A DNA stretch of 64,000 nt from Mizuhopecten yessoensis (taxonomy: Eukaryota), in contig NW_018404348.1 in assembly GCF_002113885.1 (NCBI RefSeq), forward strand, positions 198,364-262,363, read 5' to 3'. Both the position numbers and the translations under genes were made by a program. The notes under the pieces are model-generated. The model worked only from the letters and a program-made list of their open reading frames with translations. It was not told the DNA's origin and searched no databases. Positions 14,212 to 63,998 of this stretch are shown here, in pieces; positions within the stretch are counted from its first letter, which is position 1, and each line of letters opens with the position of its first letter.

Positions 14212-15593
14212 AACAAGAGGCCCAATGGGCCTGCATCGCTCACCTGGTATAAATCTCACACTTGTAACCTTAAAAGTGATCTAAAATAAAGCTACAGGCA
14301 AAAACAAATTTCAGTATTTATGATTAAAATTCATTCAAAAGAACCTGTTATTTTTTTTTTAAACATTTCACCCCTGTGATTGAAAGTCGAACAAAGTCAT
14401 TATGTTAAACAAATTTTATAGCCTTTCATCTCAGGATGCAACTTGCAAAGTATCAACATCCTGGGACCCATGGTTATTCAGAAGAGGTCGATTAAAGATT
14501 TTAAACAAATTTGACCCCTGTGACCTTGAATATAAGTCAAAGTCATTCACTTTAACAAACATAGTAGTCCTTGATCCCAGCATGCTACTGACTAAATATC
14601 AACATCCTNNNNNNNNNNNNNNNNNNNNNNNNNNNNNNNNNNNNNNNNNNNNNNNNNNNNNNNNNNNNNNNNNNNNNNNNNNNNNNNNNNNNNNNNNNNN
14701 NNNNNNNNNNNNNNNNNNNNNNNNNNNNNNNNNNNNNNNNNNNNNNNNNNNNNNNNNNNNNNNNNNNNNNNNNNNNNNNNNNNNNNNNNNNNNNNNNNNN
14801 NNNNNNNNNNNNNNNNNNNNNNNNNNNNNNNNNNNNNNNNNNNNNNNNNNNNNNNNNNNNNNNNNNNNNNNNNNNNNNNNNNNNNNNNNNNNNNNNNNNN
14901 NNNNNNNNNNNNNNNNNNNNNNNNNNNNNNNNNNNNNNNNNNNNNNNNNNNNNNNNNNNNNNNNNNNNNNNNNNNNNNNNNNNNNNNNNNNNNNNNNNNN
15001 NNNNNNNNNNNNNNNNNNNNNNNNNNNNNNNNNNNNNNNNNNNNNNNNNNNNNNNNNNNNNNNNNNNNNNNNNNNNNNNNNNNNNNNNNNNNNNNNNNNN
15101 NNNNNNNNNNNNNNNNNNNNNNNNNNNNNNNNNNNNNNNNNNNNNNNNNNNNNNNNNNNNNNNNNNNNNNNNNNNNNNNNNNNNNNNNNNNNNNNNNNNN
15201 NNNNNNNNNNNNNNNNNNNNNNNNNNNNNNNNNNNNNNNNNNNNNNNNNNNNNNNNNNNNNNNNNNNNNNNNNNNNNNNNNNNNNNNNNNNNNNNNNNNN
15301 NNNNNNNNNNNNNNNNNNNNNNNNNNNNNNNNNNNNNNNNNNNNNNNNNNNNNNNNNNNNNNNNNNNNNNNNNNNNNNNNNNNNNNNNNNNNNNNNNNNN
15401 NNNNNNNNNNNNNNNNNNNNNNNNNNNNNNNNNNNNNNNNNNNNNNNNNNNNNNNNNNNNNNNNNNNNNNNNNNNNNNNNNNNNNNNNNNNNNNNNNNNN
15501 NNNNNNNNNNNNNNNNNNNNNNNNNNNNNNNNNNNNNNNCGGACGCCGCACCACGGCATAAGCTCACTTGGCACTTCGTGCCAGGTGAGCTAA
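14212..15593. mobile_element. Helentron-associated (HINE-like) element spanning the assembly gap
   Basis: Starts aacaagaggcccaatgggcctgcatcgctcacc and ends ataagctcac...ggtgagctaa (hairpin), with tgaccttga core repeats. These termini match 58405-60246 in reverse orientation. Confidence 0.7.
14609..15539. other. Assembly gap (931 N)
   Basis: Run of N. Confidence 1.
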
Positions 15594-31407: not shown

Positions 31408-34400
31408 GTTCAGTTCAGTTTTTTATTACCTTGAACCTTACGACTCATCAGTTCAAAATAAACATATATACAAGGATAAACAATACAATCACTCACACCC
31501 ATATACACCCCCACAAATACACCCCACACACAAATACACACTCACATACCCATTGGTATAGTGTAGAGAGACATCCCTCTTTATATAGGTACATAGTCTT
31601 CCTTTTCTTATTACTCAGTTTAATATATTTGGCTAAATTTGTTAACTGTTTTTTGTTCCCTGTTTCCATAAGTTGGATAAATGTATACATGCTAGGTCTT
31701 TCATAGTAATATTTCTTAATAAAACGCTTTCTTAAATCTAAAAAACATTCACATTTTAATATAAAATGAAATTCATCTTCGATATCCCCACTGTTGCAGT
31801 ATGCACATGTTCTTTCAATCCTATCTACATTGTTATACCTACCAATTTCAATATTTAATTTGTGAGATGACAGTCTAATTTTTGTAATTTCTTTCAGATT
31901 TGTATTTCCTATGGGTTTTGTTAAATATGGTTGTAAACAGAAATTTTCGCCAATAAACTTGTACAGTGAACACTTAGAAGATGAATCTATTTTTTCTTTA
32001 CATTCTTGCGTAAATATATCACACATTCTGCTTTTAATAATATTCATAATATAATCGGATGTATAGGTATCTCCATATTGCCATATGTACCCTACTCCCA
32101 TTCTAAATAGTTCGTTTCTTACTCCATTCATCCATTCACTACCATTTTCTAACATTTCTTGATAACATGCATGTAAAACACAATTGTCAGTTTGTTTTAA
32201 TTTTAACCAGTATTTAAAAATTCTAAATTTCCTAATAATTTCCAAAGGCAATCTTCCTAATTCTTGGTAAACCATAAAATTTGCAGTAGATTTCTTAACC
32301 CCTAATAATCTTTTACAATAACTTAAATGTATTTTCTCTATATCTGGTGCTTTATGAAAGCCCCAAACTTCCGCTCCATAATTAAAAATACTACAGACAT
32401 ATGTATCGAAAACATGAAGCTGAGTTTCAACGTTAAAATATTTTTTCTTAGACACGTTTGATACTGAAAACAATGCTTTTCTTCCTTGTTCAGCGATTTT
32501 TTGTTGAGTTTTTTTGAATTTACCATTAAAATTCATTAATATACCCAGGTAATTAAATTCATCTACAATATCTAAAACACCTCCATCAAAGTACCACTTA
32601 TCTTTATCTCTTAATTTACCTCCGTTACGGAAAACCATCACCTTGGTTTTACAAGTATTAACCGTAAGATTCCATTTATTTGTATAAAGTAATAAAGTAT
32701 CTAACATTTTCTGCAATCCCTCAGAGGTTTCGGCCAATAACACCATATCGTCTGCATACATCATTAAAAATATATTAATAGTTTGTAGCTCTATAGAAGG
32801 ACACCCTTCTGTTAAAAAAATCATTTCGCAATCATTGACATACAAAGAGAACAATAGAGGAGACATAATTTCCCCTTGAAATAATCCATTTTTACATTGA
32901 AAAAAATCTGACATGTTTTTGTTATACTTTACACAACATTTTACATCTCTGTACAAAGAACGTATAATATTCAACATCTTTCCTTCTATACCTTCTTTGA
33001 TAAGTTTGTACCACAGATTCTGTCTATTAACGAAGTCAAAAGCTTTTTTGTAATCAATAAAACAGCAATACAGTCTATTTCTATTTTTCAGGGTTTTACT
33101 TATTAATGTGTGTAATACAAATATAGCGTCAATAGTTGATAAATTCTTCTTAAAACCAAACTGAGCATCACTTAATTTACAATAGTCACTATCGAAATTA
33201 GCAAGACGCTCATTAAGAATTGATGTAAAAAAAATCCCTAAACAACTTACTAAAGTAATTCCTCTGTAATTATTGGTATCGTTCTTGTCTCCTTTCTTAA
33301 AAATAGGAATTATATTACCTACCGACCATGATGTAGGATAAAAACCAGATTTAAAAACATTGTTAAACAGTACCACAAGACATGGCATAAGTACCCCTTT
33401 ACCCTTAATAAAATACTCATTAATTAGTAGATCTGGACCACACGCCTTCGAGTTGCTCAATTTATTGATAGCTTTGAGCACTTCACTATCAGATATCTGA
33501 TCATCTAATTTTTGAAACATAGTATTTGGTACATTAACATCATAATTATTTAAAAACTCATTAACCATTTCATTCTCAACAGGTTCCGTTGAAGACAATT
33601 CGCTAAAATACTTAAAAAAATCTTGTTCACTAAGATCCCCCTTATCGTTATTATTTCTTTTCTTGCATCTACTATAGAAAGCCTTAGGGTTACTTTTTCG
33701 CAAGTAATCCATCATATTACCTTGTTGATCTATATATTCGCGCTTTAATCTAGTTTCCAGTTTTTTATAGTTACACTTTTTAGATATAAAAATGTTCTTA
33801 TTTTCCTCTGACTTAAGTGAATCAAAAGTAAATAATGCGTTTTTGTATTCAATATATCTGTTTTTACAAACTTCGTTAAACCATGGTTTATTCTCCACTC
33901 GAACTTTTTTAAACCTTTCTAGATGTGCATTTAGTAACATTTAAAGACATTAACAATTCATTTAATATATTAGTAAACTTATTCACACACTCATCTATAC
34001 ATTTTTGATTATCCTCAATATTATTACAAGCATTAAATAACTCTACGGTTTTCCTCTAGTAAATGCAAAGCTCTCTCTGCATGATCCCCATTCCATTTAT
34101 CATGTGTATATATTATCTTTATCATTATAATCAGGTACAACTACGTTTTGTTCAAATGAATCCACAGTAATACAAATTGGAGAATGGTCTGAAAAAAATT
34201 ATAAATTCCACTCTCAAAGTGAGTAATATTCTTTAAGAAATCATCAACAGTCAATACATAATCTATTAGACTAGATCCCCTACTATTCAAAAAAGTTATA
34301 CTACCATTAGGATCATCTTTATGTCGTCCATTTACAATTCTCAAGGAAGTAGATTTACACAGTGAAAGAAGATGTCTTCCAAATTGGTTAATATGCAGGT

Positions 34401-35120
34401 CAGAATTGGAACGTTTGGATGGTACAGAATCATTAACATAATTTACAATATTTGAAATAATATGCGCAGGCCCTTGATTAACAATATCATTACTTATATA
34501 ATCGTCGTAAATACCCGTTCTACTATTGAAATCTCCTAGTACAATCACTTTACCTAATCCTTTATATTCACACACCATTTCCTCAAGTCTGGCAAAAATA
34601 TCAATTTCACATTTGTGATTAAAAACACTATTTACAGGTGGGAAATAACAAGCAAATGCATATATTTCACTGACATTATTTCTAATGTTATTGGATATTT
34701 TTAACAATACAATGTTGTCATTAATGTTATCTATTACCCTACAATAATCGCAGATAGTTGATTTAATAAAAAATACGATTCCACCGCCTTTACCATGCAT
34801 TATAGGAAACACACAGCTGTCATAACCTTCCAATTCTACTTCATCCTCTTTCTCATTCTGTTTCATACAAACATACAACATCATATTTGGTAATAATATT
34901 TACAAACTCTTCTGTATCTAATTTGTCCGTGATCGATCTGCATATATTCCATAAGATAATGGAAAGTCCCTCCAAACAACCCTAATACGACAAGTCGTGA
35001 TTCCCTCTAGGTGGATCGCGATCGAAGCGCGCACTGTGGTCCTTTCGCGAAGATGAACCCCTCCACCTCTGGCCAGTAGCCGTATGTTGTCCTCGCGAAG
35101 CTCACGGTTGGAATTCGCGT
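31408..35120 (-). mobile_element. LINE (CR1/L2-group-like) with near-intact ORF2: EN 34141-34980, RT 31493-33940
   Basis: WNI...VCLYET, GDFN and SLIDY (EN); NNYRGITL, FIDYKKAFD, GLFQGEIMSPLLF and YADD (RT); CAYC...DEFHFILKC. Short-repeat tail (AACTG)n. Inserted in the 34-bp array. Confidence 0.93.
31493..33940 (-). CDS. LINE ORF2 reverse transcriptase (815-aa open frame)
   Basis: Complete RT motif set including YADD. Confidence 0.85.
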   Translation of the reverse strand: MLLNAHLERFKKVRVENKPWFNEVCKNRYIEYKNALFTFDSLKSEENKNIFISKKCNYKKLETRLKREYIDQQGNMMDYLRKSNPKAFYSRCKKRNNNDKGDLSEQDFFKYFSELSSTEPVENEMVNEFLNNYDVNVPNTMFQKLDDQISDSEVLKAINKLSNSKACGPDLLINEYFIKGKGVLMPCLVVLFNNVFKSGFYPTSWSVGNIIPIFKKGDKNDTNNYRGITLVSCLGIFFTSILNERLANFDSDYCKLSDAQFGFKKNLSTIDAIFVLHTLISKTLKNRNRLYCCFIDYKKAFDFVNRQNLWYKLIKEGIEGKMLNIIRSLYRDVKCCVKYNKNMSDFFQCKNGLFQGEIMSPLLFSLYVNDCEMIFLTEGCPSIELQTINIFLMMYADDMVLLAETSEGLQKMLDTLLLYTNKWNLTVNTCKTKVMVFRNGGKLRDKDKWYFDGGVLDIVDEFNYLGILMNFNGKFKKTQQKIAEQGRKALFSVSNVSKKKYFNVETQLHVFDTYVCSIFNYGAEVWGFHKAPDIEKIHLSYCKRLLGVKKSTANFMVYQELGRLPLEIIRKFRIFKYWLKLKQTDNCVLHACYQEMLENGSEWMNGVRNELFRMGVGYIWQYGDTYTSDYIMNIIKSRMCDIFTQECKEKIDSSSKCSLYKFIGENFCLQPYLTKPIGNTNLKEITKIRLSSHKLNIEIGRYNNVDRIERTCAYCNSGDIEDEFHFILKCECFLDLRKRFIKKYYYERPSMYTFIQLMETGNKKQLTNLAKYIKLSNKKRKTMYLYKEGCLSTLYQWVCECVFVCGVYLWGCIWV

Positions 35121-41528: not shown

Positions 41529-44330
41529 CTAGGCATCGCTCTTTTTAATGCCACTGTGGAACGCTCTATCAACCTGCTCCGTTCCAAAGAAAGCTTCGAG
41601 AACTTTGACTACTACTAGCTTGGCCGAACTGGCGAAGTTCTCGTGATTCTGTGACACAAACTTGACCATGTCGTCAAGCTGGAAGTCAACGAAGGTCAGT
41701 GTCTGATGCTCAAACTTGTCTTTTGGTCCACTTGTGAAGCGGGCCTTGATGCTTTCCGCACTTAGGCGGTGTTTCTCGACTATCCTCTCATCCTTCAAGT
41801 CGACAAAACCACACAAGCCCCACTCATAGAAGTCAAACTTAAGATACACTGTCGACAGACAAATGGCGTCCAACTCTCTTCCGGTTAGCTCCACACCTAT
41901 CTCTTCCATCAAACCCCTGGCTGCCGTATTTACCAGATCGACGTAATATTGGCCGTTTTGTAGACACTTGTCCAGGGCAGATACGCTCTCCACTACACCG
42001 CACGTGATTGCACCTGGACTGGCCATGCCCAATCTCCTTGACCTTCGGGCGAAGACAAATTTCTGAGAACTATCAGGTCCCTCGTTTGTCAGAACAGCGA
42101 CATGGAGACCAAATGAATTACTATACAATGGACTGACAATACTCTTGCACGGAACGGTTTTATCTTTGTCTGTATCAGAGAGGGATATCCACATATCTCG
42201 CATTGTCCTGTGGTGGCAGTAGAGCGACTCCTGGAAGTGAAGTTCTATAGCCTGATCTTCATTAGTACCACACCTTGAGTATGTGAGCTTCTTCAAGGCA
42301 CTTAATACATTGTTGTCTATCTCCTTCCTAGCTGCCAACAGCCGGTATTTTTCAGCCGTGCGTGTGTACAAGTCTATCTGTTCAAAACCTAACGTATCAG
42401 GCACATCCATCTGTTGTACATCAACAGTTTCTATTTCACACATCAACTGTGCGTGATTATACCCTGAATGGCGAACTTTTGTGTCATAAAACCCGTTTGG
42501 CCCCGAGAAGAAAGAATCAGCAACATAAATTTGAGTGTTTTTCAGAAATCCGAAAGAGAAGAACTCAGCATTAGTGGGGTCATTGTCGTAAGGGTTTTTC
42601 TTCAGCGAGAAATATTTTGAATGAAGTTCTTCTGTTGTTGGCCGCTGGGAAGGACAGTTCTTCAAACACGATTCGATGACATCAAGAAGGGGACCATCTA
42701 AGTCCTCGGGTAGGGGTACAAAATCACCGATGAGTTGCTCAGTATTGTAGAGTTTCGACTGGTTGTCGTCAGTAGCCTTGCCCTTGTCACACTTGACATC
42801 GGCTGTCTTTATCCCCCGGTCCCGCTGTACTGCAGACATGAGTTGCCGAGTTGAAAGTTGAGCCATTGCCTTCTTCCCAGACATTGCAAAACAGGTGACC
42901 AACCCAAACGAGTAAATATCGCCACGTTTGTAATCCTGGAGACTGACGGCATTGCCAAAATCGCTCTTAAACACGAATTCCGGGGCTCCCCATCGCACAT
43001 GCACGTATCCACGTCGAGGTCCTTCCTGCAGACCATAGTTAAAAAGAGACGAAGTTACAAGCTTTTCTACGCCACAGCCCCAAGCAAGTCCAAAATCGGC
43101 GACCTTGACCCTCAACCTTGCCGGCCCAACTTCCACTAAGATATTATCAGGTTTAAGGTCACGATGTACAACGTCATTAGAATGAAGGTATGCAATAGCG
43201 TTGAAGACTTGACTGGAAATGTCCCACGCACAAGCATAACTCAGGGGACTCGTGAGCATGCGCAAGTATCCCAACAGGTTCAAATCTACGTATTCCATCA
43301 CTACAAACATAGAAGTCTCATGGTTTGTGATCACCTGATGAAGTAGAGATCTCCGTTTTTTATCTACACGTTTTTCGCGCGTTTGTGTTTTGGAGACGCT
43401 GCACGGAAGTATATACCCTGGACATAACGGAGTTGTTTTGACGGCTCCAAACTGTCCTGATTGTATCTGTTGGGCAACGGGCTCACATGAGCTAACATAA
43501 CCTTTGATGTCTTGTTGTAAATTATCAGGATCTTTGTTTTGAACATCAGTTAATGCATTTCTTACCGTTTGCATCTCAGTAACCGCTGGAGACAATGCCT
43601 CTGACTTTTGTACCGAAGATTCATCGACATATCCTCTAGCGTCACACTTCCAACTGTCTGGCACGACAAGTCTGGTATCAAGTGTTCGGGAATACTCTCC
43701 TGGAGGCATTCCTGTCTCAATATCTACGTCACTGTCACAATGAGTTGAATGTTCTGGTGATGTGGAGACTGCTGGACTAGCCATACACACGCCACTGTCC
43801 ATACCTGACTGTGACATAATGTGGCCGTATGTAGTAGGACCAGTAGACACAGGTTGTCCAGAGTATGTTTCTGTATCTATATTCGCCTGACCAACGAGGC
43901 ACTGAGAAAGGTGGTGGTGAGACACCAATCCCATCCCCCGGAACGCTACTACGTTGTCGTGATAAAGTTTTCGAAGCAGATGACATTCCAGGAAAGATGA
44001 CCGGGCACGTTCCTTTAATATTTTCACAGCAACGCGTACTCCTTGAAGACGGCATTCATAGACTTTACCAAAATGTCCTTCCCCTTTTAACGCCCAGTCA
44101 GAAAGCTGACGAGGATCAAGCAAAGCCGGTAAGCTTGGTTTTTGAACGAGTTTGAACAGTAAGAACAACTCGTGTATTTGTGTCTGCAACTCGTCGAAAA
44201 GAAGAGCGCCGTTTGACAGAATAGTGGCTAAATCGTCGTTCACGGGACATAACTGGGCGAGACTATCGAAGATGTCGTGCAGTCTACACATATAAGTACG
44301 TACAAGTGTCTCTCGCTCCAGCAGATCCAT
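41529..44330 (-). CDS. Kinase-Nudix fusion protein A (933 aa): helical N-terminus, TKL-like kinase with a ~200-aa insert, NUDT22-like Nudix domain; single coding exon
   Basis: Uninterrupted 2.8-kb ORF with GEGHFG, VAVK, HRDLKPDN, DFG, RWGAPE and DIYSFG; C-terminal SNSFGLHVAVLT...RRS...PG...RGLMEEIGV. Paralogue of 52367-54538. Confidence 0.9.
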   Translation of the reverse strand: MDLLERETLVRTYMCRLHDIFDSLAQLCPVNDDLATILSNGALLFDELQTQIHELFLLFKLVQKPSLPALLDPRQLSDWALKGEGHFGKVYECRLQGVRVAVKILKERARSSFLECHLLRKLYHDNVVAFRGMGLVSHHHLSQCLVGQANIDTETYSGQPVSTGPTTYGHIMSQSGMDSGVCMASPAVSTSPEHSTHCDSDVDIETGMPPGEYSRTLDTRLVVPDSWKCDARGYVDESSVQKSEALSPAVTEMQTVRNALTDVQNKDPDNLQQDIKGYVSSCEPVAQQIQSGQFGAVKTTPLCPGYILPCSVSKTQTREKRVDKKRRSLLHQVITNHETSMFVVMEYVDLNLLGYLRMLTSPLSYACAWDISSQVFNAIAYLHSNDVVHRDLKPDNILVEVGPARLRVKVADFGLAWGCGVEKLVTSSLFNYGLQEGPRRGYVHVRWGAPEFVFKSDFGNAVSLQDYKRGDIYSFGLVTCFAMSGKKAMAQLSTRQLMSAVQRDRGIKTADVKCDKGKATDDNQSKLYNTEQLIGDFVPLPEDLDGPLLDVIESCLKNCPSQRPTTEELHSKYFSLKKNPYDNDPTNAEFFSFGFLKNTQIYVADSFFSGPNGFYDTKVRHSGYNHAQLMCEIETVDVQQMDVPDTLGFEQIDLYTRTAEKYRLLAARKEIDNNVLSALKKLTYSRCGTNEDQAIELHFQESLYCHHRTMRDMWISLSDTDKDKTVPCKSIVSPLYSNSFGLHVAVLTNEGPDSSQKFVFARRSRRLGMASPGAITCGVVESVSALDKCLQNGQYYVDLVNTAARGLMEEIGVELTGRELDAICLSTVYLKFDFYEWGLCGFVDLKDERIVEKHRLSAESIKARFTSGPKDKFEHQTLTFVDFQLDDMVKFVSQNHENFASSAKLVVVKVLEAFFGTEQVDRAFHSGIKKSDA

Positions 44331-45159
44331 GTTTAATACGGCTGGTTTTGTTCACTGCATATAATAAGATATGTTTATGTATGGTCAAACGCACGTTAGT
44401 TTCTAGCACCAATACTACGGTTACATCATGGAGTCTAGTGAGTGGTGCGTAAACAAAATCCTTGGAAATGCCACATTTTCACTTGCAATTTACAAAGTGC
44501 ATCTTCATCATAAGGTTAGGTCCTGGTGCGCGTGACTTACCATGCATGTAGCTAAACACAACCCAAAACGACCACATCCCTGATTGCACACTGTAGACGA
44601 TCGTTGAATAATGACTCATTACGTAAATTCCAGTTCAGCTTTTAGAACACACGAGTGTTTGCAGACGTCCATCAGTTGTTTTAGAGGGAGGAAGAGCAGT
44701 ATCCCAAATGTCACTATCAGATCTAAAATATATTTGTATCTCTAATGATTAATCTGGGACGCGCGTCATCACACACCTGGTCGCGGTATGGTTATGGCGT
44801 CCTCATCTATTTCAGCCCATATTTCCTTTGTAGACACGGAAGTAGTTACACGACGGTGAGCTAGACTGATCATTCTGTATACGAACCTGTCGCTGCATAT
44901 CTTGATATGTTTTTAACAATCTCGTTCAAAACAGAAACCTGAGAAAAACTTCCTTGTTCACCGGTTCGCTTATATTTGATAGACACAGTGCATCAAGGTA
45001 AACTGAAAACGAAACCCGGTAATACAAATAAACGGGGTTTTAAACTTCCATGTTTGTATGCAATAACTCCATATCTGCAACACAATTCGCTGTTGTTGGT
45101 GTTGCTGAATTTGAACATATGGTTAACCAGGTGAAAAACAAACACATGAAAGCATGGCT

Positions 45160-46430
45160 ATATAAACCAATAGGGACGTGAGAAGATGATAAACCAAAAG
45201 GACGTGAGAAGATGATAAACCAATAGGGACGTGAGAAGATGACAAACCAAAAGGGACGTGAGAAGATGACAAACCAAAAGGGACGTGAGAAGATGATAAA
45301 CCAAGAGGGACGTGAGAAGATGATAAACCAATAGGGACGTTGGAAGATGATAATCCGATAGGGACGTGAGAAGATGATTAAGCGATAGGGACGTGAGAAG
45401 ATGATAAACCAATAGGGACGTGAGATGATGATAAAGCAAAAGGGACGTGAGAAGATGATAAACCGTTAGGGACGTGAGAAGATGAAAAACCAAGAGGGAC
45501 GTGAGAAGATGATAAACCGATAGGGACGTGAGAAGATGCTTAACCGATAGGGACCTGAGAAGATGATAAACCGATATGGACGTTAGAAGATGATAAACCA
45601 ATAAGGACGTGAGAAGATGATAAACCAATAGGGACGTGAGAAGATGATAAACCAATAGGGACGTGAGAAGATGATAAACCAATAGGGACGTGAGAAGATG
45701 ATAAACCAATAGGGACGTGAGAAGATGATAAACCAATAGGGACGTGAGAAGATGATAAACCAATAGGGACGTGAGAAGATGATAAACCAATAGGGACGTG
45801 AGAAGATGATAAACCAATAGGGACTAGGGAAGATGATAAACCAATAGGGACGTGAGAAGATGATAAACCAATAGGGATGTGAGATAATGATAAACCAATA
45901 GGGACGTGAGGATATGATTAAGCGATAGGGACGTGAGAAGATGATAAACCGATATGGACGTGAGAAGATGATAAACCAATAGGGACGTGAGAAGATGATA
46001 AACCAAAAGGGACGAGAAAAGATGATAAACCAATAGGGACGTGAGAAGATGATAAACCAATAGGGACGTTGGAAGATGATAATCCGATAGGGACGTGAGA
46101 AGATGATTAAGCGATAGGGACGTGAGAAGATGATAAACCAATAGGGACGTAAGATGATGATAAAGCAAAAGGGACGTGAGAAAATGATAAACCGTTAGGG
46201 ACGTGAGAAGATGAAAAACCAATAGGGACGTGAGAAGATGATAAACCGATAGGGACGTGAGAAGATGATAAAGCAAAAGGGACGTGAGAAGATGATTAAC
46301 CAATAGGGACGTAAGATAATGATAAACCAATAGGGACGTGGGAAGATGATAAACCGATAGGGACGTGAGAAGATGATAAACCAAAAGGGACGTGAGAAGA
46401 TGACAAACCAATAGGGTCGTGAGAAGATGA
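45160..46430. repeat. 27-bp minisatellite (~47 copies)
   Basis: Unit gataaaccaatagggacgtgagaagat; the LLVYHLLTS ORFs are artefacts. Confidence 0.95.
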
Positions 46431-46839
46431 TGGAGGGATTGGATGTGGTCATATTTCTTTTCTATCTTTGATTTCCGGGTAATTTTTAAAAAAGATCTAT
46501 GTTTCAATTTTATCTGAAAAGTAGTTTCATGTGTGTGTTTGTGATTGTATGTCTACGCAATAACTACTTCGGACCACGTGACAACGCTTTCTTTGTTCCT
46601 GGTTTTGGTTACGCTTTCGGATAGCTGACATTCGTCGGACACCATCTATAAGTCAAAATTGCCTTTTGTCATTTTGTGATGAATAGAATAGTGTTCGGTG
46701 TAGACAACCTACGGAATTCCACAACTTGGTATATCATTTTACCGTTTACCGTTAGATGTGTACTGTTTGGGTTGGGCTGCAAAAAAATATGCAAACCCAA
46801 TATTCAAACACTATGTATTTTAAATTGAAATTCATGATA

Positions 46840-47337
46840 CTATAAAAGTGGAAACTTTTGCGTGTGAAAATCATTGTTGTGTCGACCCTTTAAACTAATC
46901 GCGGCATGGAAATGTCCGCGATGTGTCGATCCTTTAAACAAATCGCGGCGTGGCAATGTCCGCGATGTGTTGACCCTTTAAACTAATCACGGCGTGGAAA
47001 TGCCCGCGATGAGTCGATCCTTTAAACTAATCGCGGCGTGGAAATGTTCGCGATGTGCACGTGTCGATCCTTTAAACTAATTGCGGCGTGGAAATGTTCG
47101 CGTTGTGTCGATCCTTTGAACTAATCACGGCGTGGAAATGTTCGCGTTGTGTCTATCCTTTGAACTAATCACGGCGTGGAAATGTTCGCGTTGTGTCGAT
47201 CCTTTACAGTAATCGCAGCGTGGAAAACATTTTTATATATACATAAATGAATATTCCGATGTGGATATTTTCGCACTATTTTACCAAATGCGAAAACCGC
47301 GAACATTACAACATCGCAAAAATGTCCACTTTTACAG
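46840..47337. mobile_element. MITE (TA TSD, 23-bp TIR) carrying a 44-bp internal tandem repeat
   Basis: Left end TA|CTATAAAAGTGGAAACTTTTGCG, right end CGCAAAAATGTCCACTTTTACAG|TA. Internal gtcgatcctttaaactaatcgcggcgtggaaatg units at 46880-47225. Confidence 0.8.
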
Positions 47338-48923
47338 TATATGACGCATAATTATTATCATTAATATTGGAGACACAGATACGTCTACTACGTAAATAAC
47401 AAATGTATGCCTCCCCTTTCTCTGTAGAGGTGACAACATTGACCAAAGGGAATGGGATACAGGAGCGCAGCTACCACTAAAAGACATCTGACAATACAAC
47501 ATTGTAGTATACATGAACAGGTGAAAAATACCATAACTGCTAGTATACATATAAACTAATGACTGGCAATTTTGCCATTGTTGCCAGTCCACTGTCAAGA
47601 GCAGCAAAAGAACGCAAAACCTCTTACATTTTGGGTCATCGACAATAAAACTACAAGAGGAAATAACTGTCAACAAACGAATTAACCAGATTTCGATCTC
47701 GAAATCGATAAAACTATGATAACGATGAATAAAGGAACTATGCATATCCTTGTAAAGGTAGAAGGAGACTAAGACATTTGTTCTGGAAGGTAAGCGTTTC
47801 CTGCTTCTAGGTAAAATCAAAGTGATATACCACATCCTCCAAACGAGTACCTGGGTAGTAAAAACGAAATAACAAGACACACTAAGGGGAATAATAAAAA
47901 AAATGTATCGCACAAAAAAATCACAATGACATCATGATGCCGAACATAAAACCTGACCATAGTCCATCCATAAACCTGCAGAAAATCATTATAGTCTTGA
48001 CGTCGCTGTTGTTCTTATTTAAAGTAAAGACCAAGGTCAGCGGCAGAGGAAGAATATTGACTGCAGTTTCTAGCTTCAAGCTTCAGTAGGGTATATCCGA
48101 TCAACGTGGTCCGTAGGTCTTTTTTTCTAAGGACAGTACATCGTCGATTTATCTGAAAATCAAATTGAGGGAACTAGCGGCAAACTTTCTGAAAATGAAA
48201 TCAAGTCGGCCAGGAGAGGGTCACAGAGTGCACGATCACCGGAATGTCAAAGACTGCTGGACAACGTTGTCACTGAACTCGATCAGCTTGTATATGTTTT
48301 CAACAAGAACTTAATCAATCTCGCAAAGTTGCACCCTCATTTTTTCTTAAAATATGATTCGAAAAGTTCACAAAACTATCCATATAATAAATATTATTTC
48401 TGTTTGCGTCTCTTGGAAAATGTGTTCCCTCAGTTTGGTATGAGAAAGTAAAATGTTCTGAAGGAAGAAAATGTTCTGTTAATTCCATTTCTGGAATACA
48501 GTATCACAATACCACTTTAATCATAGTTAAATGGAACTAACAGATCCAGCGGTGGAACAAAGTTTCAGAATCCAGTGTTCGTATCCAGATCAGTATCGGA
48601 CAGCATTCGGAATGGCTGTAATACCAAACTAGTGAAAGCATTATATACACAGTATTCCGTTTTCGGACATCCGGGTTAGAGCAATGCGGAGTTGTGGAGT
48701 ATGCCTCGTAGAATATTGCTAATGTTCATTACGTCTAACCCCTCACGGTTAGTAAATGTTTTACCATGTCCCTTCGGGGGCTCCGTAGTTGTGACAATTC
48801 ACACATGGAATATTTTGTTTTCTAAAAGAGGTCAAATCTGAGGTGATAATACACATAGTAAAACAGAATATGATTGTGTTATGATTGGCAAAGATAACAG
48901 GCGCTAGGTGTCAAGTATAATTT

Positions 48924-49246
48924 GGAGGCACGGTAGTCTAGTGGTAGGACGCCGGGCTCGTGACCTCAGGGTTGCTGGTTCGAGTCACGTCACGGCACGG
49001 TGTTGTATCTTTGAACTAAATACTTTATTCCGCTTGTTCCAGTCTACTCAGCTGTACTTGAGTACGTGGTTGAGCAGAGCTAGAATTGTTGAATGCTAGC
49101 TGTGAGATCCGAAATGGCAGCACCAGCTGTATGCTCCCCAAGGAGTTGAGAAAGATACCAAGGACAATAATTTGTGAACCGCTTTGAGACGACATACAAA
49201 CTACGTTGTGATAAAGCGGTATAAAAAAATCTCGAAATATTATTAT
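48924..49246 (+). mobile_element. Full-length tRNA-derived SINE
   Basis: A-box ggtagtctagtggtagg, B-box ggttcgagtc, body shared with 2365-2660, (tat)n tail. Confidence 0.8.
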
Positions 49247-49454
49247 ATGTATAATACTTTTAATGTCAATAGTGGCAAAAGTAAGAGATGTCACAATTAG
49301 CACAATAAATGTCAATAGTGGCAAAACCCCCAGATGTCAGATGTATAGATGTCAATAGTGGCAAAATTAACACATGTGAAAAGAATGATACAAGTTCCTC
49401 TCATTTCTTATTCCTCTATCCCTTTCTTTCTTCCTCTATAACAGTACATAAATA

Positions 49455-50075
49455 GAGAATAATACATGTCTTTTTCCATATAACACCCAGTATAAATCCG
49501 AGACTGCAATATCAGTACAAGGACCGAAGGCCCAAGGGCTGATATTGGTCGAGGGTTGATACTGGGTGTGATATGGAAAAAGGCATTTTTTATTCTGTTT
49601 ATTACATACTTACTAATAAAAGCTACTACCTTATAATCTATTTTCTTTTGAAATATTGAAAAACGAAAATAAAATCCAAAAGAGGTGTGATGCGAGTTTT
49701 GCGAGCTGATACAGGTTTTGGGGTGTCATACAGGTTTTGCAGGCTGATACAGGTTTTGGGGTGTCATACGGGTTTTGCGGGCTGATAAAGGGTTTTGGGG
49801 TGTCATACGGGTTTTGCGGGCTGATACAGGTTTTGGGGTGTCCTACGGGTTTTGGGGTGTCATGCGGGTTTTGCGGGCTGATACAGGTTTTGGGGTGTGA
49901 TAAGGGTTTTGCGGGCTGATACGGGTTTTGTGGGCCGGTACAGGTTTTGGGGTGTGATACAGCTGGGGCTGATACGGTTTTTGGGGTGTCATATGGCGAG
50001 GGCTGATATGGGTAAGAGCAATTGTGTCGTATCGCATATTCAAAAAACCTGTATTTAATAGTAAGTATGTAATAA
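49455..50075. mobile_element. Foldback non-autonomous element (Crypton-like?) with an internal ~39-bp tandem repeat
   Basis: Hairpin at 49470-49583; 22-bp inverted repeats at 49599-49620 and 50054-50075; ggttttggggtgtcatac repeats at 49690-50005. Confidence 0.55.
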
Positions 50076-50218
50076 CACTTGATATACCAGGTTCAATATA
50101 TTTCTCACCTATAATTATTGCATACATGTCATGTTAAGCAATGTGATATGGCTTAATTTTATATAGAGTTATGAATGAAAACAATTGCCCGAGTGAATAA
50201 TAGTAATTCAAAATTGGT

Positions 50219-50374
50219 ATAATATTCAATTATAGCCTTTGGCTGAGGTCGATACCTGGATTTATCGACCCGAGAAAAGATATATTGACCGAGGACGCAG
50301 TCCGAGGTTTATAAATCTTTTCTCGGGTCAATAAATCCAGGTATTAACCGGAGTTAAAGGCTTCAATTGTTTTA
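50219..50374. repeat. Long inverted repeat/hairpin (second foldback element)
   Basis: Arms tacctggatttatcgacccgagaaaagat and atcttttctcgggtcaataaatccaggta. Confidence 0.75.
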
Positions 50375-51649
50375 TTATTTTACAAAACAGTAATGTTTGC
50401 AAACTAAAAAAAACACACAACAAAAAAGCTTCGGGAGTGGGACGGTGTATTGTTTGGAGACACGTCATAATTCTATTTTTAGAAACACCCAGTCCTTCAA
50501 CAAAAATCACGCGCTCCAAGTCAATATCGTTTTTTATCGGAGGACACGTGATGCACTCCTGGCCAATCACTTGTCGGGAATAATATGAAAAAATAATAAC
50601 TCATATTATTTTATATTTGAGAATGCAAAAAAAATGGGGGCAAAGCAATAAAAGAAAATGAGTGAGAACAGAGAATGTGTAACTGAAATATACCTGTAAT
50701 GTACTGTTAAAAAATTACAGTGATCTGTTTTAGGGGAAGTTTTCTCAATATAGTAAGGGTTGGACAAATAAGGATCAACACAAATTTAAAACTTCCATAT
50801 ATATATATATATTGTCAAAATTAATCTCTGAGGTGTAATATTAAAATTGCCTGATCTTTAATAAAGATAAAATAAAAACACATTAAAAATATCTTTAAAT
50901 CACTGAGTAAGAACATGACACAACTTCAATCCTGTGGTAAAAACAGATATAACATTAAGTTTAAAATCTACATGTAAAATATTCCAATATTGAAGTAAAC
51001 GTTTAGGCAAACAACACATCTTTGAGCATTACCAAAAGTATCACAAAAAAATCATTTTTCATCTACAATATGTCTAACAACCTATGTTGATATAAATACA
51101 AAATTAATGTAGTTTTAAGAAAGATACAATTGTATAGGTCAAAATAAGAAATAGGTATGTTGTATGTTTTTTCAGGTAACATGACTGAAAAAAGGGTAGG
51201 TCCGTAGGAATATATATAAAAAAAAATAGGGGTTGGGGGGTGGGGCTAGTTTAAGGAATTCTGGCCAATATCATTTATTTTTCATTATGTTTTATGGTCT
51301 TTAGATCATTATGTGGGATGTGATACCTGCCTATGAAATAGACATGTGTAATGAGAAAAAAAATATACTAGGGACCGTAAAAACTAGGGTCGGTCAGGGA
51401 ACCTGAAACATACATAATTTGTTTGGCCTTAACAAAGAAAGTGTGGAGAACTTTTTTGTTACAGGTTTGTTTCATGATCACTAAACAATCTCCTGTTAAG
51501 TAATGTTGATAAGGCAGATATGTTTTTGTATAATAGGTTATCTAGGATCTCTACTGCATTGACCATTCAATGTCAGCTTTGACTTTTACCTAAAACCTGG
51601 TAAGAGGTAGGAGAAAAAAGCTAGTATGGTTGATATAAAATGTATGCTG

Positions 51650-52062
51650 TCCACTGTAGAACTTGGTGTACAAACTACACTGTAGAACTTGGTGTACAAA
51701 CTCTACTGTAGAACTTGGTGTACAAACTCCAGTGTAGAACTTGGTGTACAAACTACACTGTAGAACTTGGTGTACAAACTCCAGTGTCAAACTTTGTGTA
51801 CAGACTCCACTGGTGTACAAACTCCAGTGTAGAACTTGGTGTACAAACTCCAGTGTAGAACTTGGTGTACAAACTCCAGTGTAGAACTTGGTGTACAAAC
51901 TCCACTATAGAACTTGGTATACACACTCCACTGTAGAACGTAGTGTACAAACTCCAGTGTAGAACTTAGTGTACAAACTCCAGTGTAGAACTTGGTGTAC
52001 AAACTCCAGTGTAGAACTTGGTGTACAAACTCAACTGTAGAACTTGGTGTACACACTCCACT
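51650..52062. repeat. 26-bp minisatellite (~15 copies)
   Basis: Unit ctccagtgtagaacttggtgtacaaa. Confidence 0.95.
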
Positions 52063-52366
52063 GCCTATGATAGAATATTGGTAGGTCCTCCATATGTAAA
52101 TCTACTAAATTGCCACAAAGGAGTTATTTGACACTGAATACAACATCATCAACCAGATCTTTCCCGGAGGTCAGAAATGTTCGTTCCGGTGATGCTATTT
52201 ATGAAAAATGATGTCATGATATGATGCTGATCGGCCGTGGCATCTTTTTTTTGTCTTTTATTTCTCTGTCTAAAAACTTTTCTCAGCTGAAGGCCAGAGT
52301 GACCCTACTCCATCACCCAATATTTATCTTAAACTAAGACTTCAATACTTTGACTGTTTACACTAC

Positions 52367-54538
52367 CTACATATCCTGGTTAAATTTCTGGTGTACTTTA
52401 TCACTTCCAAAGAAGGCTTCAAGTACTTTGACCACCACCAGTTTGGCTGAACTTGCAAAGTTCTCATGATTTTCAGACACAAACTTGACCATTGGCTCCA
52501 ACTCGAAGTCCACAAAGGTCAGAGTTTGGTGTTCAAACTTGTCCTTCGGTCCACTGGTGAAGCGTGCCTTAATATTTTCTGCACTCAGGCGATGCTGCTC
52601 AGCTATCCTCTCATCTTTCAGGTCGACAAAGCCACACATGCCCCACTCATGGAAGTCAAACTTAAGGTATATTGTTGTCAGGCAAATGGCATCTAAATCT
52701 TTCCCAGTCAACTCCAGACCTATTTCCTCCATTAATCCCCTCACAGCTGTGCTCAGTAGATTGACATGTGTATCACCTCCACTTTTAATATAGTCTGGTT
52801 TGGAAACACTCTCTACTGCCCCACATGTAAAATTTCCTGGGCTTGACATGCCCTTTCTTCTTGCTCTCTGGGGAAATACAAACTTCTGAGGCTTGTCTGG
52901 ACCCTCATTGGTCAGAATGGCAACATGGAGTCCAAATGAATTGCTGAAGTATGGATGGACATCCCCTTTGTAAGGGACTTCCGTATTTTTTTCTGTGGGA
53001 GAGAGTGACATCCAAATTTCTCGCATACTTCTATGATGGCAATAGTCAGACTCCTCAAAGAGCAGATCAATTGTTTGCTTTTCATCCTCTCCAGGTCTGG
53101 CTAACACCAAACCTTTCAGTGCAGTTGTAGGATTGTTATCTATCTCTCTCTTCTTAGCCATGTTTAGATATTTTTGAAGACAGTCCTGGTACAGAGCTAA
53201 CTCATCATCCTGTGCCCATTGGTCAGGTATGTCTCGATATGGGGCATTTCTGGTTTCTATCTTACATATCAAGTCTTTGTGGTCATAGCCTGTTGGCCTC
53301 TTTCTGGTACCAGATTCAAAGTAGCCTTGTTTTGCATCACCTTCTTCTATGCAGGAATCTGCCACAAATATGTCAGTTTTCTCCATGAATCCACAGGAGA
53401 AAAACTCCACCTGTGTAGGATCAATCTGGTATGGATTCTTATCCACGGAGAAATATTCTGTCAACAGATCTTTGGCGCTCTTTCTTGCTTCCGGATCAAG
53501 TTGCACACATGTTTCAATAACTGTTCGTAGAGTCCCTTCCAGGGATTTTGGTAATTCCACAGGGTCACTGTCTGGCTCACTGTCAGGTGTTGATGAAGAA
53601 AGTCGTGAAGAGGATATATTGGCCAAAGCTTTCTTTCCAGTGAGTGTATAAGCCATCACCAATCCAAATGAATACATGTCTCCTCGTTGGTAATCCTCAA
53701 TGAGGAATTCTTTCTCCTCATATCTGGCAAACTCTGGGGCTCCCCATCGAATATTTAAATAGTAAGAACTTCCACCTCGAAATCTTGATGATCCAGAAGG
53801 TCTGACATAGTCCATTTGCTTTGTGTCATTGTGGCTGTACCATGCCAGCCCGAAGTCTGCCACTTTCACCAAGATGCGGTTAGGCCCCACCTCTATGAGG
53901 ATGTTGTCCGGCTTCAGGTCCCGATGTACCACGTCCAGAGAGTGGAGGTAGGCTAAAGCACTAGATATCTGCTTACCGACACTCCACGTCTGGCTCTCAG
54001 TTAGACCATGTCTCTCATGTGTTTCCAGATCCTTAATGTACTGGAACAAGTTCTTGGACATGAACTCCATCACCAGGAACATGTGTTGGTCCCCATCTAA
54101 CACATTTCCATGTAGGTCCGGCAACAACTCTCTCATTTCATTCTCAGTCATATAACCCATGCCACGGTAAGCCACAATGTTGTCATGAGTTAGATAACGG
54201 AGCAGGTCAGATTCACGGAATTTAGTCTTAGCTTGTTCTTTAAGTGTTTTGACAGCCACCCTTGATCCATTCAATTTACACTCAAAGACCATTCCAAAAT
54301 GGCCCTCACCAAGGAATTTCCTCTCATTCAAGCTACTTGGCGCCACGCAGGCGATGGAGGAAGATTTCTTTGAAAGTTGAAGCAAATCTTTCACGTGGTC
54401 ATAGATCGTGTTAACAATGGATTTAACTTCCTTAACTGTTATGTCTAGTTTTTCGCTTATTCCCGAAAAACTTTTGAAAAGATTATCAATCGTTTGAAAG
54501 CATTCTTTCAGCTGTTCTGATCGTGTATCCGGATCCAT
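52367..54538 (-). CDS. Kinase-Nudix fusion protein B (723 aa from ATG 54538): helical N-terminus, TKL-like kinase, NUDT22-like Nudix domain; single coding exon
   Basis: GEGHFG, VAVK, HRDLKPDN, DFG, RWGAPE, DMYSFG and RGLMEEIGL. First ATG (MDPD) aligns with MDLL of paralogue A; the ORF-track start at 54547 is a TTG. Confidence 0.92.
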   Translation of the reverse strand: MDPDTRSEQLKECFQTIDNLFKSFSGISEKLDITVKEVKSIVNTIYDHVKDLLQLSKKSSSIACVAPSSLNERKFLGEGHFGMVFECKLNGSRVAVKTLKEQAKTKFRESDLLRYLTHDNIVAYRGMGYMTENEMRELLPDLHGNVLDGDQHMFLVMEFMSKNLFQYIKDLETHERHGLTESQTWSVGKQISSALAYLHSLDVVHRDLKPDNILIEVGPNRILVKVADFGLAWYSHNDTKQMDYVRPSGSSRFRGGSSYYLNIRWGAPEFARYEEKEFLIEDYQRGDMYSFGLVMAYTLTGKKALANISSSRLSSSTPDSEPDSDPVELPKSLEGTLRTVIETCVQLDPEARKSAKDLLTEYFSVDKNPYQIDPTQVEFFSCGFMEKTDIFVADSCIEEGDAKQGYFESGTRKRPTGYDHKDLICKIETRNAPYRDIPDQWAQDDELALYQDCLQKYLNMAKKREIDNNPTTALKGLVLARPGEDEKQTIDLLFEESDYCHHRSMREIWMSLSPTEKNTEVPYKGDVHPYFSNSFGLHVAILTNEGPDKPQKFVFPQRARRKGMSSPGNFTCGAVESVSKPDYIKSGGDTHVNLLSTAVRGLMEEIGLELTGKDLDAICLTTIYLKFDFHEWGMCGFVDLKDERIAEQHRLSAENIKARFTSGPKDKFEHQTLTFVDFELEPMVKFVSENHENFASSAKLVVVKVLEAFFGSDKVHQKFNQDM

Positions 54539-54716
54539 GATAATCAACTTTTAAACTTCCTGATCAAAATGAAAGTAGTATTCGGAACATCTCGGATATT
54601 TCGGAACGCGTCGGCCGATTATACCGTTGCACATGGTAGGCTGAGGTAACTGTTTTGACAGCTCCAGTACTAGTTCAGTCTCGGGTCAAGGTTATACACG
54701 ATATATAGTGGCTAGC
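54539..54716. promoter_or_regulatory. Head-to-head interval (178 bp) between kinase-Nudix B and GBE1; probable shared promoter/5'UTR region
   Basis: Divergent ATGs at 54538 and 54717; locally CpG-rich; ETS-like ACTTCCTG and repeated TTCGGAAC. Confidence 0.6.

Positions 54717-63998
<9,282 letters not shown>

Follow-up and report, generated by a model that had tools for sequence, protein, structure and literature searches.

A widespread but unrecognised animal family of protein kinases with a predicted NUDT22-type Nudix module, represented by two genes of the scallop Mizuhopecten yessoensis

Human NUDT22 is a hydrolase of uridine diphosphate (UDP)-glucose and UDP-galactose. [quoted passage not shown] Another described system close to the present case is the EACC1-caspase two-gene conflict system, in which the caspase bears one of ~50 alternative C-terminal domains (Kaur et al. 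2020, PMC7159879); in a preprint, EACC1 is reported to act as a pore-forming effector that the protease sets free, and such proteases to be fused to diverse sensors (10.1101/2025.11.14.688446). Here we describe two genes, named A and B, in a window of 64,000 nucleotides from the scallop Mizuhopecten yessoensis (NCBI RefSeq assembly GCF_002113885.1, contig NW_018404348.1, positions 198,364 to 262,363 of the forward strand), each of which encodes a protein kinase followed by a C-terminal module of predicted NUDT22-type fold. The analysis indicates that the combination of a kinase with a NUDT22-fold module is an unrecognised but widespread animal family and not a scallop oddity.

The open reading frames (ORFs) of genes A and B are free of internal stops over 2.8 and 2.2 kb of the minus strand, and a protein with a sequence identical to that of gene B is present in a public collection (P0151). 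Both proteins passed the profile threshold of the eukaryotic protein kinase superfamily (PF00069/PF07714), and the Pfam Pkinase matches were well above the cut-off of 31.7 bits for A (E=1.1e-31, 110.6 bits) as well as for B (E=2.1e-39, 136 bits). The Gly-rich loop, the beta3 Lys, the alphaC Glu, HRD...N, DFG and APE are complete in the two kinases; in gene B the motifs GEGHFG, VAVK, HRDLKPDN, DFG, WGAPE and YSFG start at residues 77, 94, 205, 228, 265 and 289, with the Nudix helix RGLMEEIG following at 600, and gene A has the same motifs plus an insert of ~190 aa that splits the kinase lobes. This insert is missing from B and is kept in P0176, the gene A orthologue of another species, and in the orthologue of Pecten maximus. 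In an 18-species orthologue alignment the catalytic D-K-P-D-N and DFG are invariant, the HRD arginine varies in a few sequences, and the kinase catalytic residues are retained in most orthologues. On this evidence, the kinases of A and B look catalytically competent. The nearest solved kinases match at no better than E~1e-16 and are of mixed kinds (GCN2, Src, B-Raf, TrkA), with no obvious named group. A search with PADLOC gave strong matches on the kinase alone (mad6, E=7.6e-51) and none on the module; membership of a defence system was rejected, as the NCBIfam score for the same family was 85 against a cut-off of 460 bits, which points to generic kinase similarity. The ~65-68 residues N-terminal of the kinase (54340-54538 and 44130-44330, both on the minus strand) appear helical by eye only, show no family match and are 18% identical between A and B.

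The kinship of the C-terminal module became visible through an alignment of its relatives. In an exhaustive search of 1.84 billion representative proteins, the gene B module retrieved 183 homologues, and 41 of these were aligned (alignment A1) as the basis of a sequence profile and of an AlphaFold2 (AF2) model. The profile, compared with the PDB, found human NUDT22 first (E=2.4e-4) and further Nudix-fold proteins next; the NUDT22 match spans the N-terminal subdomain and the first Nudix strand, leaving the second half without a sequence match. AF2 with A1 gave a module model with a predicted local distance difference test score (pLDDT) of 92.5 and a predicted template modelling score (pTM) of 0.91, and this was used in place of a prediction on the single module sequence, which had a pLDDT of 32.6. 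When the model was searched with Foldseek, NUDT22 was again the top match (E=1.6e-12, template modelling score 0.73 by target, ~340 columns), with ordinary Nudix proteins next at E>=6e-6. A VIA structural search against representatives gave NUDT22 at Z=22.2, with a root-mean-square deviation of 3.7 A over 274/290 residues, and every other chain at Z<=13.9; of the 86 chains with Z>=8, 50 were listed, nearly all of them with a Nudix fold, and TIRR and NrtR are among the structural matches. Together, the modelling results confirmed that the C-terminal ~359 aa are a predicted NUDT22-type two-domain Nudix module.

The original prediction, made from the letters of the sequence, had proposed two ORFs, each with a complete, apparently active kinase and a NUDT22-like C-terminal domain containing the Nudix helix RGLMEEIG, and all of this is borne out, with both ORFs intact. 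It had also paired individual motifs with those of human NUDT22. The profile alignment to solved NUDT22 chains reproduced the SNSFGLHVAILT / ADPLGVGAALAT strand and the RRS...PG pair, and did not recover the two C-terminal pairs by sequence; these two lie inside the structural alignment, which extends to model residue 346. The module is about 15% identical to NUDT22 and 25-34% identical to its bacterial relatives, and a phmmer search of the PDB with the module as a single sequence gave no meaningful match, NUDT22 being missing at E<=1. Because of this low identity, the missing single-sequence match, the much closer bacterial relatives and a differing Nudix helix, the module is, as far as sequence can tell, not an orthologue of NUDT22. 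When the scallop's own genome was searched with the profile, no separate NUDT22 orthologue appeared, and nothing is concluded from this, as a distant gene split by introns would escape such a search. A homodimer prediction for the module, made without an alignment, scored 0.00 and gave no answer, and speaks neither for nor against self-association.

The residues expected of a Nudix active site are strongly conserved in the module. Set against the Nudix box G-x5-E-x7-R-E-U-x-E-E-x-G-U, the helix R-G-L-M-E-E-I-G keeps the EE pair, and the strand glutamate is kept as well. Across 26 sequences drawn from every architecture, the Nudix half shows no variation at E47, R71, E75, E76, D53 and D137, which comprise the glutamate of the strand, the arginine and both glutamates of the helix and two more acidic residues; the same six positions are invariant in the 18 metazoan orthologues. 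A beta-hairpin of ~16 residues is inserted between the strand glutamate and the Nudix helix. The kept metal ligands argue for, rather than prove, a working pyrophosphohydrolase.

The kinase-module architecture had been taken as unfamiliar from animals, and this part of the prediction did not hold, since the architecture belongs to a conserved unnamed family with members in a sponge, in cnidarians, in amphioxus and in tunicates. A search of a named collection with the gene B module retrieved 72 proteins, nearly all of 620-820 aa and consisting of a kinase followed by the module. The scallop homologues (Argopecten, Pecten, Ylistrum) are 85-87% identical to the gene B module; other molluscan homologues come from mussels, oysters, pearl oyster, Solemya, abalone and a chiton, and the brachiopod Lingula has one too. 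Among deuterostomes, homologues were found in three Branchiostoma species, the hemichordate Glandiceps and the tunicates Styela, Ciona and Clavelina, and further ones in many corals, anemones and octocorals and in the sponge Oscarella. None of the 72 proteins is from a vertebrate, insect or nematode, which is a non-detection and not proof of absence. More distant kinase-module fusions are carried by the jakobid Andalucia and by unnamed metagenomic proteins. On the module tree, the animal sequences form one clade with a support of 99 (Shimodaira-Hasegawa-like approximate likelihood ratio test, SH-aLRT), and genes A and B group as sisters with a support of 97. In public collections the orthologues are called 'uncharacterized protein' or bear conflicting kinase names (MAP3K7, TAO2-like, CTR1, casein kinase I-like and others), from which it is evident that the family had not been recognised. 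A check for an already characterised family in the literature searched found no description of a fusion of a kinase with a NUDT22-type module, the members being uncharacterised or misnamed.

Gene structure and divergence indicate how old the two scallop genes are. The Nematostella orthologue is 9.9 kb long and has introns, with a last-exon boundary near residue 562, while the oyster orthologue is intronless, as are the A and B orthologues in the chromosome-level assembly of Pecten maximus, which lie in the same order, the gene A orthologue (65% identity) being 4.3 kb downstream of the B orthologue. Given that the Nematostella orthologue has introns and the scallop and oyster genes have none, introns would have been lost in the bivalve lineage, possibly by ancient retrocopy. 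Public ORFs of 160-210 aa with ~60% identity to the Nudix half were considered as a separate short family and rejected, because their exon boundary is that of Nematostella, which identifies them as the final exons of eukaryotic orthologues with introns. The overall identity between A and B is 51%, with values of 47% for the kinase, 46% for the first half of the module and 74% for the Nudix half; saturation is reached at synonymous sites (proportion of synonymous differences, pS, ~0.78), and the nonsynonymous divergence (dN) in the Nudix half is 0.17. Because saturated synonymous sites go together with low dN, A and B are, on substitution patterns, old duplicates under purifying selection and not recent copies or decaying retrocopies. 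A search of the own genome (988 Mb, 82,659 contigs) found no gene beyond A and B. A third copy was considered and rejected: contig C79468 (1.9 kb) repeats the final 150 codons of gene A at 99% identity and most likely represents an unplaced haplotig.

Transcription was examined with assembled RNA contigs. In run X10, recorded as RNA-Seq, a single 2,541-nt contig is colinear on 52003-54533, and in run X1 a 2,558-nt contig covers 52003-54560; RNA depth drops to ~0 beyond 55.2 kb. Since the contigs are colinear and have no joints, an unspliced transcript spans the whole gene B ORF, kinase and module included, and the check for a transcript that joins both domains thereby came out positive for gene B. 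The gene A orthologue P0176 (59% identity, colinear) comes from a 3.4-kb assembled contig.

Most members of the module family are bacterial. Direct sequence homologues of the scallop module carry an N-terminal caspase in three cases, a TIR domain in three and a kinase in several, and a shape search added HTH-fused clusters and clusters with TIR plus Hexapep/GMPPB_C; on the module tree, TIR fusions arose at least two times. Stand-alone members are 325-415 aa long and come from Actinomycetota, Chloroflexota and Pseudomonadota. One TIR form lies amid DUF3800, Type ISP restriction, FokI-nuclease, UvrD and IS66 genes. The second (GCA_022842825.1, 6001-9172) is followed by an overlapping ORF and then by another TIR gene, near BrnT/BrnA; the overlapping ORF has weak, sub-threshold similarity to alpha/beta-hydrolases (Pfam E 0.005-0.04), and the locus may be an undescribed TIR-based defence operon. 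Directly upstream of each of two caspase forms, one of them from Thermomonospora, there is an EACC1 gene, and by its gene order this arrangement of EACC1 and a caspase-module protein is the two-gene conflict system of Kaur et al. 2020. The family is a candidate conflict/defence module, given the recurrent fusion of its members to immune output domains and their defence neighbourhoods. In the literature searched, the NUDT22-like domain is not named at such TIR or caspase fusion positions, and no experiment was found on protection against an invader by module-carrying bacterial systems.

The identity of the kinase and of the NUDT22-type module is secure; the analysis shows the gene structure, the transcription of gene B, the fold, the conservation of catalytic residues, the phyletic distribution and the bacterial fusions in their contexts, and we infer the substrate and the role of the proteins, and with them the enzymatic activity, the identity of the ligand, the coupling of module and kinase and the immune function. 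With a probability of roughly 0.5, A and B are functional old paralogues in which a hydrolase/sensor module for nucleoside-diphosphate-X (NDP-X) compounds is coupled to a kinase in nucleotide-linked immune or stress signalling. The module, which keeps the Nudix metal-binding glutamates, would most likely bind and hydrolyse an NDP-X compound, for which a nucleotide sugar, a molecule derived from adenosine diphosphate (ADP)-ribose or nicotinamide adenine dinucleotide (NAD), or a related signal are candidates. Because the same C-terminal module swaps among TIR, caspase, kinase and HTH outputs in defence-type contexts, it would be the ligand-handling part, a sensor and/or a signal terminator that controls the output domain. 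TIR, caspase, kinase and Death domains are all activated by induced proximity or conformational change, and the output domain attached to the module may be switched in one of these ways. Hydrolysis of the ligand is suggested because the catalytic residues are invariant, and it would make the module a self-resetting sensor or signal terminator. In the animal proteins the output would be phosphorylation, probably in an innate-immune or stress pathway, and the scallop proteins would be NDP-X-responsive protein kinases. The phyletic pattern of the family matches the immune expansions of marine invertebrates (Kaur et al. 2021, PMC8195603). The earlier idea of a nucleotide-coupled signalling enzyme with an immune or metabolic role is still inferential and is strengthened by the bacterial TIR and caspase fusions in defence contexts and by one predicted gene model of Branchiostoma belcheri, in which an N-terminal Death domain precedes kinase and module. 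A bolder possibility, offered tentatively, is that the family consists of receptor kinases for nucleotide signals, an animal class so far unrecognised. The module would detect an immune nucleotide, for example an ADP-ribose isomer that is TIR-derived or another NDP-X signal of related kind, and would then destroy it, and the kinase would be turned on when the ligand binds. If true, this would define a signalling axis that marine invertebrates have in common with bacterial TIR/caspase conflict systems; in vertebrates it was not detected here.

Several observations weigh against the interpretation of A and B as nucleotide-linked immune or stress kinases. The last ~360 residues of A and B have no match in Pfam, PF00293 included (E<=0.1), and the module has none in NCBIfam or PADLOC; one bacterial relative has a weak PF00293 match (E=0.0084) that stays under the cut-off. 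Some of the stand-alone bacterial members sit among housekeeping genes, and a GNAT acetyltransferase comes after one of them. The Death domain was seen in one predicted amphioxus model alone, where it may be a gene-model artefact. Raw reads were sparse in two further transcriptome runs, with few over the gene B ORF, which indicates low expression there. Lastly, in the caspases associated with EACC1, the variable domains at the C-terminus are interpreted by Kaur et al. as effectors rather than sensors (PMC7159879), and control may run in either direction. One of the main rivals is the opposite direction, in which the kinase would regulate the hydrolase.

A different reading, which we regard as unlikely, concerns the module alone and holds that it is a non-catalytic ligand- or protein-binding domain, like TRPM2 NUDT9H, NrtR or TIRR, that merely gates or scaffolds the kinase. 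The Nudix box is indeed non-canonical, with RG in place of RE, and the long loop insert places the strand glutamate ~23 residues from the helix and not 7; because of this departure from the consensus, catalytic activity cannot be assumed, which also counts against a hydrolase. Nudix sensors on output domains are moreover established for HTH regulators (PMC9503650), and the module has an HTH-fused relative and NrtR and TIRR among its structural matches. Against this, the arginine of the helix and all three of the canonical glutamates that serve as metal ligands are invariant in every sampled architecture. Pure binding Nudix modules usually do not keep their metal-ligand glutamates.

The genes could alternatively encode metabolic regulators with a role in UDP-sugar/glycogen metabolism, co-regulated with a glycogen branching enzyme gene through a common divergent promoter, an explanation that we consider doubtful. 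The ATG of gene B (54538) lies 179 bp from that of the branching enzyme (54718), head to head on opposite strands, and because the RNA contigs of the two genes end and start so close to each other (Table 1), the promoter between them would be very short. The head-to-head layout is retained in Pecten maximus, where the branching enzyme, with CBM_48, Alpha-amylase and Alpha-amylase_C domains, is separated from the B orthologue by a 161-bp gap and the A orthologue comes next. In line with a metabolic role, the nearest solved structure is that of a UDP-glucose hydrolase yielding UMP and glucose-1-phosphate (PMC10101856), and one bacterial architecture bears Hexapep/GMPPB_C, a region of the sugar-nucleotidyltransferase type. 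The adjacency was, however, not seen within 10 kb of the oyster or Nematostella orthologues and may be scallop synteny alone, so that it is weak evidence of a metabolic link; with ~15% identity and a differing Nudix helix the substrate of NUDT22 is not transferable, and what accompanies the module in bacteria (TIR, caspase with EACC1, restriction genes) is of immune and not metabolic type. That the ORFs are retrocopies without function, or an artefact of assembly or contamination, is very improbable. The intronless state of A and B beside an intron-bearing Nematostella orthologue and the reverse-transcriptase debris of a long interspersed nuclear element (LINE) nearby (31493-34884) could be cited in its favour; against it stand frames intact over 2.2 and 2.8 kb with low dN against saturated synonymous sites, intronless orthologues in the same order in the chromosome-level Pecten assembly and another in oyster, RNA contigs that cover gene B, and an ordinary intron-bearing animal gene flanking A and B.

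Table 1. Positions of genes A and B, their parts and adjoining features in the window (position 1 is its first nucleotide)
Feature	Position	Strand	Description
Gene A	41529..44330	-	intronless ORF, 933 aa + stop; helical N-terminal region, split kinase, NUDT22-like module
Gene A kinase domain, insert included	42615..44102	-	residues ~77-572; Pfam Pkinase in two stretches, the best being 336-572
Gene A kinase insert	43341..43913	-	~residues 140-330, ~190 aa, Ser/Thr/Pro-rich, between N-lobe and hinge
Gene A NUDT22-like module	41532..42608	-	residues 575-933; 61% identity to gene B module (alignment A1, row 2)
Gene A Nudix helix RGLMEEIG	41895..41918	-	residues 805-812
Gene B	52367..54538	-	intronless ORF from its ATG, 723 aa + stop
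Gene B kinase domain	53456..54325	-	residues 72-361; Pfam Pkinase E=2.1e-39
Gene B NUDT22-like module	52370..53446	-	residues 365-723; N-terminal beta-rich subdomain and Nudix subdomain (predicted)
Gene B Nudix helix RGLMEEIG	52718..52741	-	residues 600-607; E604 and E605 invariant across the family
Gene B transcript	52003..54560	-	assembled RNA, colinear, no joints, entire ORF covered
Tandem repeat, 26/52-bp	51650..52063		in or just beyond the gene B 3' untranslated region, downstream of the stop codon; RNA contigs break there
Short divergent promoter region, gene B / glycogen branching enzyme gene	54561..54651		gap between RNA contigs ending 54560 and starting 54652
Glycogen branching enzyme exon 1	54652..54820	+	ATG 54718, splice donor after 54820, next exon from 56640

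Later exons of the branching enzyme, an intron-bearing gene, are recognisable at 60738-60980 and 63193-63477. Between A and B there is a minisatellite at 45162-46431 (27 bp, 47 copies, 89% match), and ORFs at 45158-46507 were rejected as genes, being an artefact of this minisatellite; hundreds of repeat loci across the genome match their translations. Elsewhere in the window, a LINE-type retroelement at 31493-34884 on the minus strand has an 815-aa reverse transcriptase ORF and, upstream of it, a 247-aa endonuclease/exonuclease/phosphatase ORF; weaker reverse-transcriptase debris lies at 9752-10486. A run of N at 14609-15539 (assembly gap or masked) accounts for the low G+C reading at 14-16 kb.

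Taken singly, both Nudix hydrolases and protein kinases are familiar, and a conserved single chain joining a kinase to a NUDT22-fold hydrolase is undescribed in the literature searched. The most informative new result is the link provided by bacteria, where TIR, caspase (with EACC1), kinase and HTH domains are exchanged as partners of this very module. Through it, the animal kinase-module family would join the growing set of immune parts common to prokaryotic conflict systems and marine invertebrates, human NUDT22, an enzyme of isolated fold, gains its first clear relatives with informative contexts, and the function of the module becomes directly testable in the prokaryotic fusion network.

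Compared with the described systems, human NUDT22 (PDB 5LOR, 5LF9) resembles the modelled scallop module in having an N-terminal beta-rich subdomain and a Nudix subdomain; it is stand-alone, whereas the scallop module is fused to a kinase, and it is reported to be without a conventional Nudix box (PMC5688067), whereas the module family keeps R-G-L-x-E-E-x-G. In the EACC1-caspase systems, bacterial relatives of the module are the variable C-terminal domain of the caspase component, right downstream of EACC1; the scallop proteins have a kinase in place of the caspase and no EACC1 partner, and are encoded by single eukaryotic genes. Bacterial TIR immune proteins, Thoeris-type and related, are approached by the TIR-module fusions, which adjoin restriction, toxin-antitoxin and further TIR genes and are candidates for a defence role; the animal kinase-module proteins are without TIR. 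A Nudix-fold module fused to and controlling an unrelated output domain is likewise seen in the NUDT9H of TRPM2, an ADP-ribose-gated channel (PMC4974056), and in NrtR-type HTH regulators, in which a Nudix sensor sits on an output domain (PMC9503650); the scallop module, too, has an HTH-fused relative. NUDT9 and NrtR belong to Nudix clades other than the NUDT22-like one, whereas in the scallop proteins the output is a protein kinase and the catalytic glutamates are retained.

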